The translations under genes were made by a program, and so were the position numbers. A stretch of DNA of 62,104 bases, the filler included, from Sluysia triapertura (taxonomy: Eukaryota), in NCBI GenBank assembly GCA_046118255.1. It is 4 parts of 4 records of this genome, joined end to end, with 100 filler letters (N's around TTAATTAATTAA, not from the genome) between each part and the next. Parts side by side here need not be neighbours in the genome. Positions count along the whole stretch, not along the records: positions 37,723 to 49,417 come from JBJNIA010178697.1; 3 more parts are not named here. One strand, written 5' to 3'. Each line of letters opens with the position of its first letter. Position 1 is the first letter of the stretch. The notes beneath the pieces were generated by a model. That model saw nothing but the letters and a program-made list of their open reading frames with translations. It was not told the DNA's origin and did no database searches. Shown in pieces: positions 37,723 to 49,417 of this stretch.

Positions 37723-38494
37723 ATAAGTAAATATACAAAGAGTTTAATATTAAAAGTTTAACTTTAAGATACAAAAATCACCAAATTTAGAAATTGTTGA
37801 TTAACAATTAATCGTTGATAAATTTTAAGATTCTTTAAAGGAAATAGAAGATTACTCAGAGGAATCACTTGCTTTTAAGATACCGACCCTCGCTATTCTT
37901 TAATTTTAATTGACATCTGTAATTGCGTCTTCGCTCAGATATAAAGCGCAAATTACAGACGAATCCGTTCATTGAAAAAAAATCATAATTGTTAGTTTTT
38001 ACAAAAAGAAAACGTAACAATATGAACGCATGCTTATAAATACATATAAGAATCAATCATCACAACTACGCAATCGCATAATCACGTTAATTCTAAATGT
38101 GCTTCGCACACAATACTCTTTCTGTCTTGCATCAGGCTATGATAAAAGTGGTCATAATAATAATAAGAGAAAAGTAACCAGTGTTAAGTATGTTCAAATT
38201 TTTTTCTAAAACTTCAAGAACTTTATTATTAGTATCATTATTTTTTTTATTAAACACAATTTTTACAAAACAATTACAAACGAAAGTAGGATATTATTAT
38301 ACTTTTTATTCTGTTGGGATTGGTGAAGGTTAAAAGTAGATGTAAGAGTCAGGACTAAGGATAACAGAATAAGTTCAACATTATTAAAGAATTAAGATGA
38401 GGCAATTTGATGAACTGTAATGGTAGTGTTGCGGCAAAAAGCCTAAAAGTGCCATTTGGTAAAATTGACTATAATAAAATACGTTTGTTAGACG

Positions 38495-38566
38495 GGGCTG
38501 ATAGCTTAGTGGTAGAGCATTCAAACTGCGCAGCGAAGGTCCCGGGTTTGATCCCCGGTCAGTCTA
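38495..38566 (+). tRNA. tRNA pseudogene or tRNA-derived SINE head (isotype unclear)
   Basis: Acceptor stem GGGCTGA/TCAGTCT, D arm TAGCTTAGTGGTAGAGC (A box), T arm CCGGG-TTTGATC-CCCGG (mutated B box), followed by TTTT. The anticodon stem is mismatched. Confidence 0.75.
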
Positions 38567-39881
38567 TTTTATGAAGTCTAACCGTAGGACAAGCACATAA
38601 AATATTTAAATCGAAATAAAATAATGAGAAATACAAAGAAATGACCCTTTAAAAGGTTTTATTTGTTAAAATACTAAAGTACATTTGTTAATTAACTTAA
38701 TTAAAATTTATTTAATTTAATAACTCAATAGAAATGTTTGCTCATGATATAAAGATATTAAATTTAGTGCATAATGTTGAGTTTTATTATTGGTTTTAAT
38801 GATGAAGTATTGCGAAGCATGTCAATGTCAACGTAAAAATTAGTATTTTAATTAATTTTGTAATTTAAAATTAAAGATTAGATATGTTTCATGTCTAAGT
38901 ATTAATAAAGTATATGTCAAATTAATGCTTATAGAGAGACAAATTTAAATATGTTATTGAACTTGACGTGCAACGTACGGTTGACTCACAACATTTTAAT
39001 GCGAAATACTCCTGTGAAAAATAAATTTATTATTTCATTAATTTTATCGTTAAATTAAATTGACAAATTGTGTTATTAGTATAAAAGCAATGTAACAATG
39101 ATTTTAAATTTTAATTAGGTGATATTAAGAAGATAAGGGATTGTTTTCCACAAGTCTCACTATCTTTAAATAATTGGAATGAAGTTGAACATAGACGGAA
39201 ATTTAATCGGCGAAATTAGTCGGCTTATTGCCGACTAAAAGAAAATCAACAGCTTTAATTTCCGATTTGTTTGATTTCTTATTTTTAATTTCACTAATTG
39301 CCGCTATATAAACAGCTATATTTCTGCAATAAAAACAGAAGTAAAAAGGACAATAGAACAGAGTCAGAATAAATTAAGTAAAGCAAACTTTTTATCTAGG
39401 GAAGTTGCTTTAGTTCATCTGTGGATAACGGTGAAACCAAAGTCATTTCTTTAGCAATTGACGAAAATAATCGAGTTTCTTTTTAGGACAATGGTTAGTA
39501 ATATAAGTCTTAATTTTTATATTTTGCATTGATACAAATGCTAAAGTTTAAATATGTTGTGTCACCCCTCGTTGTAATTGTTTTTAAAGAATAATTTACC
39601 TTTTTATAAAGAGTAATTTGTATTGTCATAATTTACATATATTCTATTTGTAGTTTTGTAATAATATAACGAATATATCGAGATTTTGAATTTATTTAGT
39701 TATTGAGTTTTAATTTAATAATTTGGGAAAATAAAAGTAATAAAATACACAACATTTTTATGAAACGGGAATCACCGACAAAAACTTTGTTGCTATTTAT
39801 AATGAACTGTTAAATAGATTTAGTGTTGAAGGTGAACAAGATGATGATACTATAAAATTAAAAGGTTATTTAATTTATTTA

Positions 39882-40193
39882 ATGTACGAAACACCCAAAA
39901 CTGAGACAATTAAAACTGAAGCTATGTATGATGGGTATAACAGCAAATTTAATGATGGAATGAAGCAGAAAGTGGATAGAAGAATACTAAACTGTCTTTG
40001 GTATTTAGAACGATCGAAAGAAGTAAAGTCAGGTAACAATCTTTATATATGCATGTATAAACCCGTTCGAGAGTCTCATTTCTTAGTAAAACTTGGCTCA
40101 CATTTTAATTTGGAATTACCTAATGACCTTAATAGTCTGAAGCATTTTGTATCAGTTGATATCAATAAATATCTTGTAAAAATAAAAAAATAA
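39882..40193 (+). mobile_element. Possible Polinton-type polB N-terminal region fragment
   Basis: LYICMYKPVR..GS..LELPNDLNSLKHFVSVD loosely resembles the YxPLxGSSYIxLPxxLxxKxxIINI segment of Maverick polB. Confidence 0.3.
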
Positions 40194-40862
40194 TTTACAT
40201 TCTGTTGAATAAGTCGAGATTACACAAAGCTTTACCGTGTAAATTCAACGTTGAACGAATAAAAGTGGTATACATCACCTTATTACTTTTCCTACATAAC
40301 CAGTGTCAAACGGTAAATCAAGGTTTGAAAGACTCTGATTTGAATGGCAACAATTCGAATTTCATATTCTTGAAGCAGACTACGGATGCATCGGGAACAT
40401 CGTATATGGAAAGAGTAAAATTTATTTTAGGATATTTTCGCACAATTTTATTTGACAAATACGAACTCAAAGTAAAAATGAATTCACTTGATGTTAGCGG
40501 ATCAAACATTTTTTTGACAATGTTTATTTTAAAGTAATTTTTAATCTTATCTATTTTTGTTTTAGGATTCACAATCCCGTGCAGTGGATAGCATGTCTTC
40601 AATTGAACCTGAATCAAAAAATAATAAACATTTTCATGTTATAAATATGGTATCTGTGTTCCATCTACATAAAATTATATACAATTGTTGTCATATATTT
40701 TTGATTATCAGCGAAAACTTTCAATTAATTAAAGAAAATTATTGTAATCTTGTACTTTCTTATAAAGATCGAAATAAAAAATTAAATTTTATAATAAATG
40801 AAGTAATGATTAAATCAATAAAAAATAATGTAATTTTAATAAACATTAATTATTCAAATAAA

Positions 40863-40874
40863 TGGTGTCAGGAG
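40863..40874 (+). promoter_or_regulatory. Putative primer-binding site (tRNA-Leu)
   Basis: TGGTGTCAGGAG is complementary to the 3' end of metazoan tRNA-Leu(CAG) and lies upstream of the Gypsy coding region. No clear LTR was seen. Confidence 0.45.
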
Positions 40875-41676
40875 CTAAAAAGGACGCCCTCGAATTGTGG
40901 ATATGCTATCAGACCAGGGATTGCGAATTTTCCTGAAAATTTTATTGTCACACGAAAATGCATAAACTTTATTAAATATAAATTTCAGAATAAGTTTATA
41001 AAATATATAAGCAATAATATTCATAATAACTCTAATAATATTCAATTTGCATATACTAAATATATCTTCTTAGATAACTATGTAAATCTAGATAAAATTT
41101 TTTATAAGTATATATCTACCTGCAGAAATATAATGAAAAACATACTAAAAAACCTCTTTTCAAACAACAACATCACCAAAAATACTCAACACAAACCTTC
41201 ACAACAGGATATCCATGAAATAACCACAATCACATCTTCATCTATCAATAACATAAAATCTAATAACAATCTCAATTTTAAGAACACTCAACAAAACACT
41301 ATCACTACATCTATCACTACCTCTTATTTTAAACTTAGACAACAACAAAATTAAAGAAAATAAACACGTTACCTTCAAATTACAAAATAACACACTTCAC
41401 TTCATACCTATACGTAATCAAACAAGTAATAAGTGTAAATCAAATAATAAGAAACCAACTAAAGCACAGAAAAACATCTCTAACATATCGAACAACACTA
41501 TCTTATTTCAAAACTCACCGAATAATAATAATAGTAATAAATATTTGCACCATGATATCACTGTTCAACCAACACACAGGATAATACAAACTATATCATC
41601 AAAAACAAGTAATGAATCACTTATTAAACACAAAACATAAGACCGTGTCATTAACTCACATAATAGTATAAAACCT

Positions 41677-42534
41677 TTGCAAAACTTCGTAAAGAATAAG
41701 AACAATGATATATATTCACATAATAACAATTCTGAACAATCAAAAAACAATACGACACAATCTTTACAAATATCAGAAGCAGAATCACCACATCAACCCA
41801 TCTTACAACAACAAATTACCACAAAACTCCGCAAAAATGACATATTCACTCATACAACAACATCAACATACAACATAACGTCAACTGCATTTCTAGAAAC
41901 ACTTAATAAACCTTTCCATAAAAATAAAATTCAAAAATCTTCCATACAAATATACTCCGAACAGTTAAAAACAACACCTTTCATCTGGACAAATACAATC
42001 CATAATCGTAATAAAATTTTTTGTTACGGGTTTGCTACCACACCAGCCACATCTTTGAACCACTCTACAAAGATACATCAAGCTGAAAATAACGTAACAA
42101 AAGTGTCTAAGCCAGCACAATTCACCCACGAGAATATACTACAATTGTTATGGTCCCCTAATAAGTATAAAATTAATTATAATGAATCCTTCGCACAAGT
42201 TTGCAAAGAAGGTCCCCAACGTAAATGTGCCACTAGGGCCACCTTAAACCAATGGATCAATAAATTTAACTTTATACAAGCTAATACACCCAGGAACGTA
42301 CTTAAACAATTTGACAAGAATATAAGTAACAAAGCCACCACACAAGATCAAAAGACTAATAAACTAAACTTTAAACAAGTCAATATGCCCAAGAACGCAT
42401 CGAAACAATTAGACAAGAAACCAAAAAACGAAATCAGTAAACAAAACCAAAAGCAATCTAATATCCAAAACAAACAATTGAAAACTTATTCGAATAATCA
42501 AATTCACAAAATTCAGATCACAAAAAACAAATAA
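41677..42534 (+). CDS. Low-complexity N/K/Q/T-rich ORF, probable N-terminal extension of the Gypsy Gag precursor
   Basis: 285-aa open frame with the same A/C-rich, G-poor bias as the Gypsy body; internal repeat KFNFIQANTPRNVLKQFDKN / KLNFKQVNMPKNASKQLDKK. Confidence 0.5.
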   Translation: MQNFVKNKNNDIYSHNNNSEQSKNNTTQSLQISEAESPHQPILQQQITTKLRKNDIFTHTTTSTYNITSTAFLETLNKPFHKNKIQKSSIQIYSEQLKTTPFIWTNTIHNRNKIFCYGFATTPATSLNHSTKIHQAENNVTKVSKPAQFTHENILQLLWSPNKYKINYNESFAQVCKEGPQRKCATRATLNQWINKFNFIQANTPRNVLKQFDKNISNKATTQDQKTNKLNFKQVNMPKNASKQLDKKPKNEISKQNQKQSNIQNKQLKTYSNNQIHKIQITKNK

Positions 42535-42721
42535 AACGGAACCTATTATTCCACAAAAAGTCACAAATCAGAACAATCAACCAAAGACAACTACACCCCG
42601 ATCAATTCTTAAACAAAAAGAAATTCTACCAGGAACAATAATTCATTCAACTACCGCATTCTAACGGCATGTTCATACAGAGGTGAACACATCCATCAAC
42701 AACAAAACCTAAATAAATCAA

Positions 42722-42937
42722 ATTATACCTATAAGGATTAAGTGCGTAACATGCAGCCTAAACTTGCGTCTTAAAATCAAATACTTCGATCCCATCAATT
42801 TGTTAAATAAATTAACTAAACATCATAAGGCATGGTTTACGTACCAGGCGCAACCTTTAAGTCCCCATTTAAGATTCAGCGACTACAATATCCCACAGGG
42901 GGCAATTATATCAATAAACCATCAATTACCTGGCGGT
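42722..42937 (+). CDS. Ubiquitin-like domain with C-terminal di-Gly, directly upstream of Gag
   Basis: IIPIRIKCVTCSLNLRLKIKYFDPINLLNKLTKHHKAWFTYQAQPLSPHLRFSDYNIPQGAIISINHQLPGG (72 aa). The C-terminal part aligns without gaps to ubiquitin [34 protein letters not shown]. Confidence 0.75.
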
Positions 42938-45900
42938 ACTGACGACGAACCATATCAAGTATCAGTACTCCGTCGTTGTCACAATTTTTCTTAGACGATA
43001 CTGGTTCTCCAAATATATGGTTTTTGGTTGTTGAAGCCATGTTCAAAACCAGTGCGATTAAACATCAAACTATGAAGTTTAATCATGCTCTAGCGATGTT
43101 GCCGCAGGCACTCCTAAGTAAAATTAGTCCAAAAATTCTAACATGTATTGCTTCAAAATCTCCGTATGACGAGCTCAAACAAATCGTCGTACAGCAATAC
43201 CGTCCAAATTCGGAAAAAGTCTTTCAAGACTACTTTAAGGTACAAACACTAGGTACTCTTTCACCTTCCGAATTTCTAGCAAAAATAAAAACAGACTTAG
43301 CGCCATTTGGTTGTGACATCGATAAAACCACGATATCTTAAAAAGATTATTCCTCGATGCTATGCCTCTCACAGTCCAAGGCATACTCATAGGAACTCAC
43401 AACATCAAAATCGACAAACTGGATAAGATCGCCGATAATATTATTGCAGTTTGGAACAAGAATCACCAACAACCTCTTCCAATAATCAAAAATACACTGC
43501 AACAACAACTAATATAGAAACTCAAAACCTTTTGTTACAGGTTCAAAATCTGACAAAACAAGTCGTAGATCTTACAAAAATTCTATTTTCAAAATCAAGA
43601 AAGAACTCACCAACAAGAAGAAAACGTTCTCCCACCTTCTCAACGAGTTCCTCTAATTCAAATAAATCATACAGAAATAGAAGACATTTTCAAAGAATAT
43701 ATTACTATCGCAACAGATTCCAACAACAAGCTAAATCTTGTTCATTATGATGTAGATTTCCAAACAAATCTAGAACTTTAACAATAAAAACTTATGCGTG
43801 TATCGTGCACACTTTCAATAAAGTTCCAAAAGATGCATAGATGGCTGCATCTATTTCAAACAAAATTAAAACCCTTCATCAAAAAACTAAATTTGCCAAC
43901 GATCAAAGCGGTTAGACCGAAACAATTGGCAATTAATGGTATTTTCACATTGCCGCTCACCTTTACCGATTTCAAATACACCAAATTTGATTTTCTGATA
44001 GATACTGGAGCTGCCGTATCTGTAATTCCTCAGCTCTTCATTAGAAACACACCACAGACACGTTCCTTTCTTACAGCAGCTAACGGAACAACTGCTACCT
44101 GCTACGGCTCCAGAAATCTACAATTCAAATTACCACACTTTAATAAGATCTTCGAATGGACTTTTCTAATAGCCGACTTCTAACTCACTATAAACAAAAC
44201 TTTAACAAAATCCTTCGAACAGCTAAACAATATAAAAATTAAATTAGAGGATCTCAATAACAACAATATAACACAATATATACAACAAATGCAACCCTAA
44301 ATACGTTTCTACCCAGACCACCGTGCAGACAAAGACGACGAGAACTTGCACAAAAAATACGTTCCCAGGCAGAAACAGAATTCTTTGAAATGGAAAGACA
44401 GGGAATTGTGCGACGCTCTTCTTCTTCATGGGCCACACCTCTGCAAAGCGTCAAAAAGAAAGATGGAACAATAAGGATATGTGATGACTACAGAATGCTT
44501 AATAAAGTCACTGTTCCAGACGTATATCCTGTGCCACTTATAAGACATCTTTCACAGATTGTACAATCTTCTCCTCAATAGACCTTGCCAATTCTTACCA
44601 CCAAATCCCAGTACATACTGAGGATATACCAAAAACAGCCATCACAACTCCTTTCGGCCTGTTTGAATATTTACGCATGCCTTTCGGTCTAAGAAATGCA
44701 GCACAAATCTTCCAAGGTCACATCGATCAAGGCTTAACTTTAACTACAGCCTATATCGATGACATCATAATTGCTTCCAGAGATTTCAAACAACATTAAA
44801 TACATCTGGAACAAGTATTTCAAAGACTATCCGACAATAATTTAATCATCAAAATCAACAAATGTCAATTTTTCAAAAGTAAAATCACTTTTCTAGGTAA
44901 TAACATCTCTGTTAACGGGATAGAAACCCGTACAACAGCAATAAGAGACCTACCTCAACCTAAAACAGTCACACAAATAAGAAGTTTCTTAGGCCTTGTT
45001 AATTATTGTCGACACTTCATCCCGAAACTGTCAGAAATAATAGCACCATTAACAGTATTATCATCGGGAAAGAAAAATCAACAGATCAATTGGAATACTA
45101 AATCTCTGGAATCCTTCGAACTAACAAAACAAGTTTATCATTTCCACTACAACATCTACCGTTCACCTTTAACAACAGATACTTCAAATATAACAATTGG
45201 TGTGGTACTAACTCAAAGTCCTCAAGAGACAACCAGACCCATCGAATTTTATTCCCACAAACTGTCTGCACAACAAGCTCGTTATTCGGCATTCGACCGT
45301 GAATTGCTTGCAATTTATCTTTCCATAAAACACTTCGAGTATCTCTTACTCCCAACGCAATTCACACTCATAACAGACCACAAACCGTTGTTACACATAT
45401 TCACAATGAAAAATCCCACTCCTGAGGCCTTTTGTTTCGAAAATTAATTTCTACGAAAACTATATTATTGGTCTTTAATTTTGTTATGAATTCAACTATT
45501 ATACTATTGATAATTACAATAAAAAATTTTTTATTGACCTCTGTTAGTCCTACGAACTAGCCGTAACTTGTAAGTCTATGACCGTAGGCAAACTCTTTTT
45601 ATTATTTATTGATAAGGTAATCTTTAATTTAATCCAAAAATAATTAGTTTGTGACAAACTCTTACCTAATTCAGAATAATAAAATCAAAATTTAACGTAA
45701 TGGTCATAAAAATACTTATTGAAGCAATGATACATCAACTTAAATTGAATATAAATCTATTCAAATGTAAAACTTATTTTCAATAATAATTTTTGATACA
45801 ATTAACAAGTCACTCATCAATTTCAATAATTAATGAGAATTAATTGATATATACTTTTACTGCATGTGCTCATTATAATACATAGAAATCTAACTTTATA

Positions 45901-45959
45901 ATTAATAAAATTAATTAACATACGTTAACGTATTTCACACTATCTCGGTGTTCACAACA

Positions 45960-46706
45960 CTAATAAATTTCATAACTGTATTCCGTTGTATATGGTACCT
46001 GTGTGGAGGGCAATTTATATTTTAATTTAATAAGTTTAGAATTAATTTTATTTTTATTTATATTAAAAATTATTTTAAATAAATAAATTACGACTGAATT
46101 AAAACAATTTGAAAATATTATTTTTGTCTTTATCAACATAGGCTTAAGGCCTGAAACAATTAAAAACCATAACATAATTAATAAATTTAATAAATTGACA
46201 AAATCTGTAAACATGTAAAAAATAACATTTGAACAATAATATAATAAATACATAGTTAATACTTGAATTAAAATAACCAGTTCCATAGTAACACCACTTG
46301 TAAGATTACGTACTTGATTGATATTAATTACAATATTGGAAACATTTAGGAATTCCACCAGACTATCTTTGCCTATATTTATCGCATTAATGGTAAAAAG
46401 TGGTTTTTGACTGCCATCATTAAATTCGTAGAAACACTTTGCTAGTTTAATGACAAAAGCTTCACCAATAAGTATGTAATTCAAAACCGGACTTGATTCA
46501 TTTCTTAAAATCATCTTATAAAGATCCTCATTTAATAAATTGCCATTTTTACAATCTTTTACTAAGTTTATTACCTCATATTCTCTAATTTTTTCATTCC
46601 AGTTATTAGATAAACCATTTTCATAAGTATTTAGAGCATTAACTGGTATCATAAGTAAATTATTGATACTTATAATGCTTAATAACATGAAATGTATCGG
46701 TAACAT
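45960..46706 (-). CDS. Hypothetical membrane protein (signal peptide plus hydrophobic segments), intronless
   Basis: 248-aa ATG-initiated ORF in AT-rich DNA; hydrophobic N-terminus ending near VNA, and hydrophobic stretches in the C-terminal half. Confidence 0.5.
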   Translation of the reverse strand: MLPIHFMLLSIISINNLLMIPVNALNTYENGLSNNWNEKIREYEVINLVKDCKNGNLLNEDLYKMILRNESSPVLNYILIGEAFVIKLAKCFYEFNDGSQKPLFTINAINIGKDSLVEFLNVSNIVININQVRNLTSGVTMELVILIQVLTMYLLYYCSNVIFYMFTDFVNLLNLLIMLWFLIVSGLKPMLIKTKIIFSNCFNSVVIYLFKIIFNINKNKINSKLIKLKYKLPSTQVPYTTEYSYEIY

Positions 46707-47409
46707 ATTTTAAGAGTAATTATAAAAAAATATCAATATTTATTATTAATAGCTATTAATAACTGTTTTAATTTTAAACCTACCTTTTAAATACAAAAAA
46801 CCAATTTTCAAAATAAGTGATAATTTCCAATAAAATTGTGATTACATAAAAACAATTAATTACTTAACTTTTATCATATCGATAATTGGTTGAATTAAAA
46901 TTTTTAAAAAATTCTTCAATTTAATTCATTTGCATGTATGCATTAGAAAGCATTGCTATAAAATTAATATTTGATGTGTTTATTTAAACAGTTAAACCTG
47001 ATTATCGGTGAATTATATTAATTACCAAACGTAAAAAGTAATGATTTTTTAAAATCAAATATTTTAAATTTAAAATAAATCAGAATTGTTTGCTTAATAT
47101 GTTTGTTTTTTTAAATCATAATTATTCTATATTTTAGTAATGTAGCACTGTTTAATGTAAACATTTAATTAATAAAAATTACTCCCTTTGTTCGAAGTAT
47201 GATATGTATTTCAAAAAAATCGTAGATTATCGAAAATACATGGCGATAATCGTATTAATATTGTATTCATTGACTGTCACATAAGTTAATATAAATGACG
47301 GGTGTTGCATTCGTGTAAAGTAAGAACTTGACGAGCGAAGATAATCTATGAACTGCTGTGATTTGAAAATGGCAAATTCCGAAGAAAAATTGATAAACTT
47401 AAAAAGTAA

Positions 47410-47905
47410 AGATACCAAACGTAAACAATTGACCGAAGAGTAACGCCATTTTATACTAGAATAAATATTATATCACATGAAATAGAACAAGTTACAACAC
47501 GGTACAATCAAGTAGCCCGTCTGAACATAAGTAGAATTTGGCATAAAGAACAAGCTTAATATAGAGAAGGCAAAATATGTGCCGATGTTTCTTCAAAAAA
47601 GAAAGATAAATGCGAAAGAAAACGAAAATATTTCTTTGACAATTTAGCTCAAATAAAAAATACATCATTAAATCATCGAAGAACGATTCGCAGTCCTTCT
47701 GTGGCAATTAATATTACAAAAAACTTTGTTTGATATATTTAAACATCGAAATTGTTTAAGCGAATTTATTACACAGTTAAACTTATTTTAACGGATAAAA
47801 ATAAATTATAATGATTACAGTTTTGCTTGTCGCAGGTAAATCTTACCAGTAAGAGAGACTTTCTTTTTGATGATTTACATGAATACGTTCATATTGACCA
47901 AAATT
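47410..47905 (+). mobile_element. DD39D-type (plant-like) mariner transposase fragment
   Basis: RKQLTEE; HRRTIRS; VKLILTDKNKL..LQFCLS; FDDLHEYVHIDQ (cf. VHIDEKWF). Decayed. Confidence 0.7.
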
Positions 47906-49417
47906 TAAACATTCTTATTACCTAATTATCAAGGTCATTTTAATGCGTTTCAATTCAAGGTCATAATTCATTTCAATTAATATGTCTGTATTATAAATCT
48001 AAATATAATCTCAGTTAATATGTTTGCATAATGTTATAAATCTAAAAATAAAAAAATCAATAAATATGTTTAATACTAAAATAGAAATTATTATTATTAT
48101 TGTTATAAAAATTTTTAAATAAATAAAAAATAAAATTTCAAATTAAAAAATTGTTAATTATTGTTTTATTCTTTCATCGAAAAAACCTTCAAAGTCACCA
48201 AAGTAGCTATATAAAGCTACACTAATTTTGCATTTTCACACACGATTGTTCAAGTCTAATATAATTTTTTGATTTGGACCGTTTACAATTTTGGATTGCT
48301 CACACGGATTTTCTTTGAAAAAGGTTTTTTCTAATATTTATTCTTTAGTTTAATTTTTGTATGATTCTTTTTTAATTAAGATTGTAAAATTTACGTAAAA
48401 TTTATTTAAAATTTTGTTATCTTTTTAATAGAGTTGAAAAAATTATTATTATACTATAAAATTAAAAAGTATTATAAATTAATCTGTTAATATCCATTAT
48501 TTGTCATTGTAATCCAATCGTATTTTGTTTTTGTAAAATGTATATTAAATTCGTTGCTTGCTATATTATACCATTATAGGATACTCCGTTTTTTAGTTGC
48601 GGTTGTAAAATATACTTAAACTCATTAAAGAAAGACTAATAAATGTAAGGTGCCATTTTTATAATGCAGTAGTAATATAATAGTAAAACAGTAGTAATAG
48701 TAGTAACCCATCATTTATTTTAATTGATTAAAAACTATATTTGGTTGCAAATATAATACAGGAAGGCGATTTAAGACACCATTTTTCCACATGAATTTTT
48801 CTAATTAATTATTTAATTCTTCAAAAACGGTATTGACTTTATTTTACATAAAATAACCGATCATTTAAAATCATTATTTACCTCCAATTACTACTTCTTT
48901 TGTTTGATACTTACAACTTAGCTTTTATGTGAATAAGACTAAGATAGTAATGGACTCATCACATAATTATAAATCACCAAAGTTCTTGCATAATGTTAGA
49001 CGAAGAAGAACTTGAGAGAAACTGACAAAGCAAAGATTTATAAGTGTAGGACTTTGATAATACATTAAGCATATTTTGGTACATTGAACATGTGAATATT
49101 ACTTTGTACATTGAACATTTGATATTATTTATTAATTTTATAATTTTGAATTTATTATTTTTAAAAAATTTGTAAATAATTTTTGAAATATTTTCATAAA
49201 TTTATTTGGAATTAAACAGCAATAAAAACTAACGTAAGTATTTCTGATATTTCTAATATATTATTAATTAAAATATTTTCAATAAAATTTGTTTTAATTA
49301 TTAAAAATTAATATTATTTGTCCAAGGTCAACTAAATAAGTATATAAGCATTGCACAAATGCGCTAAAAAAAACAAAAACAACAACAATATTAACAATTT
49401 TAATACAATCAATTTTT

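Follow-up and report, generated by a model that had tools for sequence, protein, structure and literature searches.

Retroelement Gag is normally matured by the aspartic protease that the element itself encodes. In cells, linear fusions that join a partner X to the terminal Gly-Gly (GG) of ubiquitin, as in polyubiquitin, UBA52 and RPS27A, are cut by host deubiquitinases, with ubiquitin aiding the expression of its partner, and rapid cutting is expected in eukaryotic cells at any such junction in which X is not Pro. In cytopathogenic pestiviruses, cellular ubiquitin C-terminal hydrolases cut a captured ubiquitin to give the authentic N-terminus of NS3, and in the CP Rit isolate of bovine viral diarrhoea virus (BVDV) the ubiquitin is missing its first residues and follows a fragment of host origin (PMC8310069). 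Here we analysed a 62,104-nucleotide stretch of DNA (the window) from Sluysia triapertura (assembly GCA_046118255.1), in which a ubiquitin-like (Ubl) domain ending in GG stands shortly ahead of the capsid-like part of Gag in a decayed Ty3/Gypsy-type long terminal repeat (LTR) retrotransposon (record JBJNIA010178697.1, positions 37,723 to 49,417). Alignment with related elements shows a family gag frame that reads U5, primer-binding site and variable leader, then a Ubl ending in GG, a short acidic linker and Gag, and suggests that the captured ubiquitin probably serves as a host-protease cleavage site.

The arrangement resembles the BVDV ubiquitin inserts (Osloss, CP1, CP Rit and others) in that host ubiquitin appears to have been captured directly 5' of a protein needing a free N-terminus. 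However, the pestivirus inserts are sporadic and recent RNA-virus recombinants with near-identical ubiquitin, for which the cut has been demonstrated, whereas the family described here carries a long-standing, clade-wide and highly diverged Ubl in the gag frame of an LTR retrotransposon, for which the cut is predicted. In the cellular fusions ubiquitin is N-terminal and begins with Met; the family Ubl, in contrast, is internal, does not retain Met where its N-terminus is recognisable, and follows variable sequence of U5, primer-binding site and leader. A gag frame that starts in U5 and crosses the primer-binding site is familiar from Ty1/Copia-type elements, but Ty1 lacks a ubiquitin module, and the N-terminal residues of its frame belong to Gag.

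Among Gypsy-like elements, the giant polyprotein of planarian Burro/GYPSM1 includes an Ubi2/SUMO-like motif (PF11976) among many host-derived domains (PMC6431247). This motif lies far downstream of Gag, between accessory domains, with no GG-Gag junction or processing role described, and Burro Gag has CCHC knuckles. It is the sole ubiquitin-family motif in a Gypsy polyprotein that we found in the literature, and our non-exhaustive literature search yielded no published description of a ubiquitin-Gag fusion in retrotransposons. The CsRn1 clade (CsRn1, PwRn1, AgCR and Boudicca) is marked by a CX2HX9CX3C (CHCC) Gag signature and a tRNA-Trp primer-binding site (PMC2582038), and searchable papers report no Ubl in the Gag of this clade.

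The Ubl-Gag junction in the window

Re-translation reproduced the 72-residue frame ending in GG that had been described in a first reading of the window (the original prediction; Table 1). The frame ends in ...SDYNIPQGAIISINHQLPGG (...HQLPGG), and the translation continues as TDDEPY..., with T as the residue after GG, to a stop codon at 42992-42994. SDYNI and GG are 13 residues apart, as had been claimed and as in ubiquitin, for which the alignment of the family protein P0010 to ubiquitin served as comparison. Because the Ubl frame is stop-free only from 42713, directly 3' of a stop at 42710-42712, and holds no ATG, the domain is not the start of a protein; translation must therefore begin upstream, in U5 or at the primer-binding site.

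Gag is encoded in a frame that stays open from 42943 to 43338 and reads ...LSQFFLDDTGSPNIW... Its N-terminal domain matches Pfam DUF7041 (PF23055) with an E value of 8e-14 (52.2 bits against a cut-off of 28), and tblastn with intact relatives places it at 42970-43299. No ATG precedes its conserved start, in agreement with the original prediction, and a TTG is found at 42976 instead. The Ubl and Gag frames overlap at 42943-42991, so the frameshift between them falls within this interval. A single frameshift near 42975 had been proposed; the frameshift stands, and the similarity of both frames to the linkers of relatives weakly favours a site closer to 42950.

Distribution among related elements

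A search with the Gag segment against 1.84 billion representative proteins gave 543 matches, and the presence of a Ubl was scored in the 150 closest Gag relatives, all of which are metagenome-derived. In 29 of these, 12-46 residues separate a Ubl ending in GG from a Gag that follows it in frame; the other copies are thus in frame, as the Ubl-Gag idea had required. In the top matches, Gag is distant from the N-terminus and the preceding segment ends in RLRGG, RLKGG, RLLGG or similar. In a tree of the 70 best Gag relatives and the window, the 29 Ubl-bearing proteins and the window all fall within one 38-row clade (97% in the Shimodaira-Hasegawa-like approximate likelihood ratio test, SH-aLRT), while the 30-row sister clade has a Ubl in none, even though Gag is preceded by 60 residues or more in eight of its proteins. 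A further search with the family alignment found five proteins, and a locus search with an eight-sequence alignment found four loci, three of them previously known.

Truncation of the gene call accounts for most of the eight members of the 38-row clade in which no Ubl was called: that of P0058 begins inside the RLRGG tail, and those of P0011 and P0018 begin within the linker after GG. P0003 was rejected as a Ubl-less member, its contig carrying the C-terminal half of a Ubl with GG directly 5' of the ATG. P0007, whose gag ATG overlaps the primer-binding site, is the only member checked and found truly Ubl-less. At L011:180-299, only the C-terminal half of the Ubl and GG remain, with an ATG immediately after, and at L012:100-190 the Ubl is absent and the gag ATG overlaps the primer-binding site; these two loci may represent stages of Ubl loss and the ancestral state.

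One related locus (L004:1-10324) consists of two tandem copies of a 5076-bp unit with identical layout of open reading frames (ORFs). The unit looks intact, with a Ubl-Gag of 497 aa, a Pol of 1120 aa, one LTR and a 22-nt primer-binding site, and the tandem could be an array sharing LTRs or the assembly of a circular or collapsed form. Its Pol contains RVT_1, RT_RNaseH, Integrase_H2C2 and rve, and those of L003, L007 and L015 are similar. On the 32-kb contig L003, a complete element of the family is accompanied by a gene for a protein-primed family B DNA polymerase (PF03175; L003:9871-12567, - strand), which is typical of Maverick/Polinton-type elements and consistent with a eukaryotic host.

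Relationship to ubiquitin and constraint on the domain

In a Pfam search the window Ubl alone had no match, even at E 10, and phmmer against the PDB returned three ISG15 C-terminal domains only, at a non-significant E of 0.5-1.4, though in a suggestive register, both sequences ending on GG. A hidden Markov model (HMM) of the family Ubl was then built from 27 segments, leaving out the window and two near-canonical ubiquitins. The window Ubl fits this profile with 30.9 bits (E 1.3e-11, single test), the profile itself matches ubiquitin residues 2-76 with an E of about 1e-13, and 12 of the 30 aligned family segments match PF00240 individually.

From the single sequence, AlphaFold gave a poor model (predicted local distance difference test, pLDDT, 54) whose N-terminal half already runs b-b-a-b, and a Foldseek search with it was uninformative. 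With the family alignment, the model reached a pLDDT of 91 and showed a beta-grasp in the order b-b-a-b-b-3/10-b; the start of both models agrees with the beta-beta-alpha-like pattern noted earlier in the N-terminal part. The top Foldseek hits of the second model were ubiquitin, NEDD8, SUMO and ISG15 (template modelling (TM) score 0.80-0.85), and the best 50 were without exception ubiquitin or Ubl structures (TM 0.78-0.85), including a Ddi1 UBL complex. Matches in a viral structure library were giant-virus ubiquitins, baculovirus v-ubi and BVDV polyprotein fragments with ubiquitin inserts. These results indicate that the window Ubl belongs to the ubiquitin family (beta-grasp, PF00240), the sequence link running via the family profile, and the profile matches and the structure prediction together support a beta-grasp fold.

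The ratio of non-synonymous to synonymous substitution rates (dN/dS, Nei-Gojobori) was 0.30 for the Ubl in each of two independent pairs, P0012/P0015 and P0013/P0010, and 0.05 for the Gag N-terminal domain. By this estimate of ~0.3 the Ubl is shown to be under purifying selection, in favour of the original prediction. Across the family, core positions in ubiquitin numbering are 85-100% hydrophobic. In the tail, L73 is L/I in 29/30 and R72 is R/K/Q in 26/30, while G75-G76 is invariant (30/30) among Ubls that are otherwise ~25% identical. The Ile44 patch (L8, I44, H68, V70) and K48/K63 are lost, so it is the fold and the protease-threaded tail that are preserved and not the signalling surfaces. 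In the 30 sequences GG is followed by S, N, T, M, A, D, V, K or Q, never by Pro, and then by acidic residues; S/N/T with acidic residues next is the start noted for the family linkers.

The leader and the start of translation

The sequence TGGTGTCAGAAG is found directly 3' of the LTR in L001, L002, L003, L004, L006, L007, L008 and L012, and the order pol end, polypurine tract, LTR, primer-binding site is seen in L002, L004, L006 and L008. In 7/7 related loci with DNA available, the Ubl frame contains no stop from a point 5' of this shared primer-binding site onwards (chance 8e-4 to 1e-20), and in all seven the first in-frame ATG lies at or before the site; in L004, L008 and L012 the final base of the LTR and the TG of the primer-binding site together make up an in-frame ATG. 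Leader frames stay open over up to 553 codons. Gene-calling artefacts and read-through from adjoining host genes were rejected as sources of the long N-terminal extensions, because the frames far exceed chance length and lie inside the element, 3' of the polypurine tract, LTR and primer-binding site. The LTR pair of L003 (L003:380-1110 and L003:6040-6760) is alike over ~320 bp only, and the 200 bp 5' of the primer-binding site, which hold the ORF start, are without a clear counterpart in the 3' LTR.

Gag had been called CsRn1-like. The CHCC signature bears this out, two CHCC motifs being nearly invariant in the family alignment, with a decayed remnant containing a stop in the window; the primer does not, as the family primer-binding site, TGGTGTCAGAAG(TGGGGTTCGA), is not of the tRNA-Trp type. 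It presumably fits the 3' end of tRNA-Leu(CAA), and ARAGORN found no tRNA on the related loci that might confirm the primer.

The Met1 position of ubiquitin is replaced by F, I or Y in all five members with a recognisable ubiquitin N-terminus; its codon is ATA in L001 and TTT in L002, and F/Y is encoded in P0015, P0017 and P0035. The leaders are unrelated even at 97% Gag identity (20-30% leader identity between close relatives whose Gag is 79-97% identical), and the Ubl is intermediate.

In the window, the primer-binding-site-like motif is unique (0 expected in shuffles), and an open path leads from it to the Ubl through 40566-41351, 41257-42531 (one stop) and 42482-42991 (two stops). The probability of staying open is ~9e-11 at 24% GC for the first of the two leader remnants and ~3e-9 for a 285-codon ORF in the second. 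These stretches fit a decayed single frame of ~2.4 kb and imply that a leader of ~620 codons once shared its frame with Ubl and Gag. Stop-free stretches of 262 and 297 codons, at 24-32% GC, were observed in the window leader.

Host-gene fragments and a possible second capture of ubiquitin

Pieces of host genes lie in frame ahead of the Ubl in five family proteins. They comprise an LRRC47 fragment in the leader of P0006 (L008:533-2158; E 6e-20), an HSP90 fragment in P0002 (L007; E 7e-11), an ARP8 fragment in P0001 (L006; E 4e-5), and histone H2A and cohesin SCC3/SA fragments in P0041 and P0012 (L009), respectively. In L006 the ARP8-like segment starts between the AT-rich 5' part of the LTR and the primer-binding site.

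A Ubl-Gag cassette of 1.4 kb is shared by L009:2693-4115 and L010:2797-4219 at 92% DNA identity. In each locus it forms an in-frame fusion with an upstream ORF of more than 800 codons, and these two ORFs are unrelated. The homology runs from about ubiquitin residue 3 to ~70 nt past the gag stop, Gag dN/dS is 0.05-0.17, and neither an LTR nor pol was found at these cassettes. The two loci could represent non-autonomous derivatives, or else chimeric host-Ubl-Gag genes.

In P0010 and P0013 the domain is ubiquitin itself, at ~80% identity (precomputed PF00240), with Met1 replaced in both near-canonical copies (L001:717-944 for P0013 and L002:2710-2937 for P0010). In these members the descent of the Ubl from captured host ubiquitin is shown directly at the level of sequence identity, and the captured, diverged ubiquitin of the original prediction is borne out. 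Both proteins are nested among the Gag relatives P0004, P0008 and P0019, which share one very diverged type of Ubl; by parsimony, this suggests a second capture of host ubiquitin in the P0010/P0013 line.

The window copy and its flanks

The copy in the window is a decayed, 3'-truncated Ty3/Gypsy-type element with several frameshifts and with stops inside Gag, that is, a dead relic (Table 1). Protease, reverse transcriptase and RNase H follow in Ty3/Gypsy order and integrase is absent. The match to intact Pol ends at about residue 594 of 1120, so integrase and the 3' LTR are missing, and no LTR pair was found in this piece of the window.

Table 1. Features of the Ubl-bearing retrotransposon copy, in window coordinates
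Feature	Position	Strand	Details	Evidence
Leader remnant 1	40566..41351	+	mod3=0; 262 stop-free codons; crosses the primer-binding site	no Pfam match
Primer-binding-site-like motif	40863..40874	+	TGGTGTCAGGAG; marks likely 3' end of 5' LTR	sole window match
Leader remnant 2	41257..42531	+	mod3=1; 425 codons; one stop, 41638-41640; low-complexity	no Pfam match
Stretch in Ubl frame just 5' of Ubl	42482..42721	+	mod3=2; stops at 42662-42664 and 42710-42712	
Ubl	42722..42937	+	72 codons; no Met at start; ends Gly-Gly (GGC GGT, 42932-42937)	
Acidic linker after GG	42938..42991	+	TDDE...; holds Ubl/Gag frameshift; frames overlap 42943-42991	
Gag N-terminal (capsid-like) domain, DUF7041	42976..43338	+	premature stop 43339-43341	Pfam, tblastn
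Gag continuation	43326..43451	+	other frame (mod3=0)	tblastn with P0001, P0020
Second CHCC zinc-knuckle remnant of Gag	43789..43866	+	in-frame stop	tblastn
Pol aspartic protease region	43974..44177	+		Pfam, tblastn
Reverse transcriptase and RNase H	44378..45426	+	two frames	Pfam, tblastn

Two further features were noted near the element. The sequence at 38495-38566 (+ strand) matches a tRNA model of Rfam (44.4 bits) but receives no call from ARAGORN; on visual inspection it looks like a tRNA-Cys whose anticodon arm is damaged, and could be either a tRNA pseudogene or the first part of a tRNA-derived repeat. Immediately beyond the truncated element, the AT-rich flanking sequence contains a 248-codon ORF (45960-46706, - strand) that looks hydrophobic and has no Pfam match.

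Discussion

We propose that host proteases cut at the captured ubiquitin of this family and thereby separate Gag from an N-terminal extension of arbitrary sequence, and assign this reading a probability of roughly 0.6; the cleavage, the enzyme and the benefit to the element are what we infer from the comparisons above. Translation would begin at an AUG in U5 or at the junction of LTR and primer-binding site, and the ribosome would traverse a leader almost free to vary in sequence. Host ubiquitin-specific (or Ubl-specific) proteases would then cut after GG, freeing Gag with a defined N-terminus, and the leader-Ubl piece would be discarded. The Ubl was probably gained at, or close to, the base of a single Gag clade, and fresh host ubiquitin has probably replaced it at least once. 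The computational tests that accompanied the original prediction, on fold, on other copies in frame, on GG and on selection, all came out in favour of the Ubl-Gag idea.

Several points weigh against this proposal. The support for cleavage comes from sequence only. The relatives are metagenome contigs with prokaryote-style gene calls, so their start codons are not established, and in P0001, P0002, P0031 and P0003 an ATG immediately after GG could yield Gag without cleavage. The choice of segments by their GG anchor is partly circular, the fact that Pro follows GG in none of 30 sequences is by itself not significant, and the family alignment given to AlphaFold contained the two near-canonical ubiquitins. 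Most family Ubls are just ~20-25% identical to ubiquitin; with this low identity and the loss of the Ile44 patch, which many deubiquitinases contact, recognition by general host enzymes is not assured.

Instead of being a cleavage site, the Ubl could be a working domain kept on Gag, either providing an in-cis ubiquitin signal, be it for proteasome docking, for budding or for trafficking, or helping folding or solubility. Uncleaved Ubl domains are common in cell proteins, such as Ddi1, which combines a UBL with a retropepsin-like protease; the core of the Ubl fold is conserved in the family, and Burro provides an internal SUMO-like motif in a polyprotein. However, integral Ubl domains are normally without a C-terminal GG, which here is the sole invariant feature across ~30 divergent Ubls, followed in conservation by L73 and R72 of the tail, whereas conservation does not extend to the Ile44 patch, which binds receptors, or to the lysines that form chains. 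A ubiquitin-GG-X junction with X other than Pro is, moreover, expected to be cut fast in eukaryotic cells, and we consider a permanently attached Ubl improbable.

No more probable, in our judgement, is that the cut serves the upstream product, with the Ubl separating captured host cargo, or a leader-Ubl piece with a free GG for conjugation or as a decoy, from Gag. The in-frame LRRC47, HSP90, ARP8, histone H2A and SCC3/SA pieces, the leader frames open over hundreds of codons and the joining of one Ubl-Gag cassette to two unrelated long ORFs in L009 and L010 would all fit such a role. Against it, the host pieces are partial domains, and no function of the leader is conserved, since the leaders of close relatives are unrelated; as these do not align, a dN/dS for the leader is not measurable.

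Chance likeness, or a fragment of a host ubiquitin pseudogene beside a Gag pseudogene, would agree with the missing Pfam match, the non-significant ISG15 hits and the decayed, out-of-frame state of the window copy, but is hardly credible for this locus given the fit of its Ubl to the family profile (E 1e-11), the same in-frame arrangement in 29 independent relatives (in samples traced to date) and the purifying selection on the Ubl, and for the Ubl-Gag arrangement these comparisons exclude it.

Returning to cleavage by host proteases, a bolder and more tentative form of the proposal, to which we give slightly under even odds, is that this clade has made captured ubiquitin an obligatory host-protease junction, with the leader as a site of repeated in-frame pickup of host fragments and of ubiquitin re-capture. 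If so, anything 5' of GG would be clipped off, and therefore the gag frame may start in U5 and carry arbitrary sequence, and the leader may collect host fragments.

Cleavage at the Ubl would explain gag frames that start in the LTR, a Ubl without its own start codon, and hypervariable leaders with host-gene fragments. It would mean that the ubiquitin system of the host has taken over a step of Gag maturation, which would be a processing strategy new to LTR retrotransposons and a long-lived, evolved counterpart to the sporadic ubiquitin captures of pestiviruses. The natural, highly diverged Ubl-GG sequences are useful for asking what deubiquitinases minimally require. The family would also represent a natural ubiquitin-fusion expression cassette and, as in L009 and L010, a possible route to host-Ubl-Gag chimeras, by which host exons and Gag could fuse into new genes.

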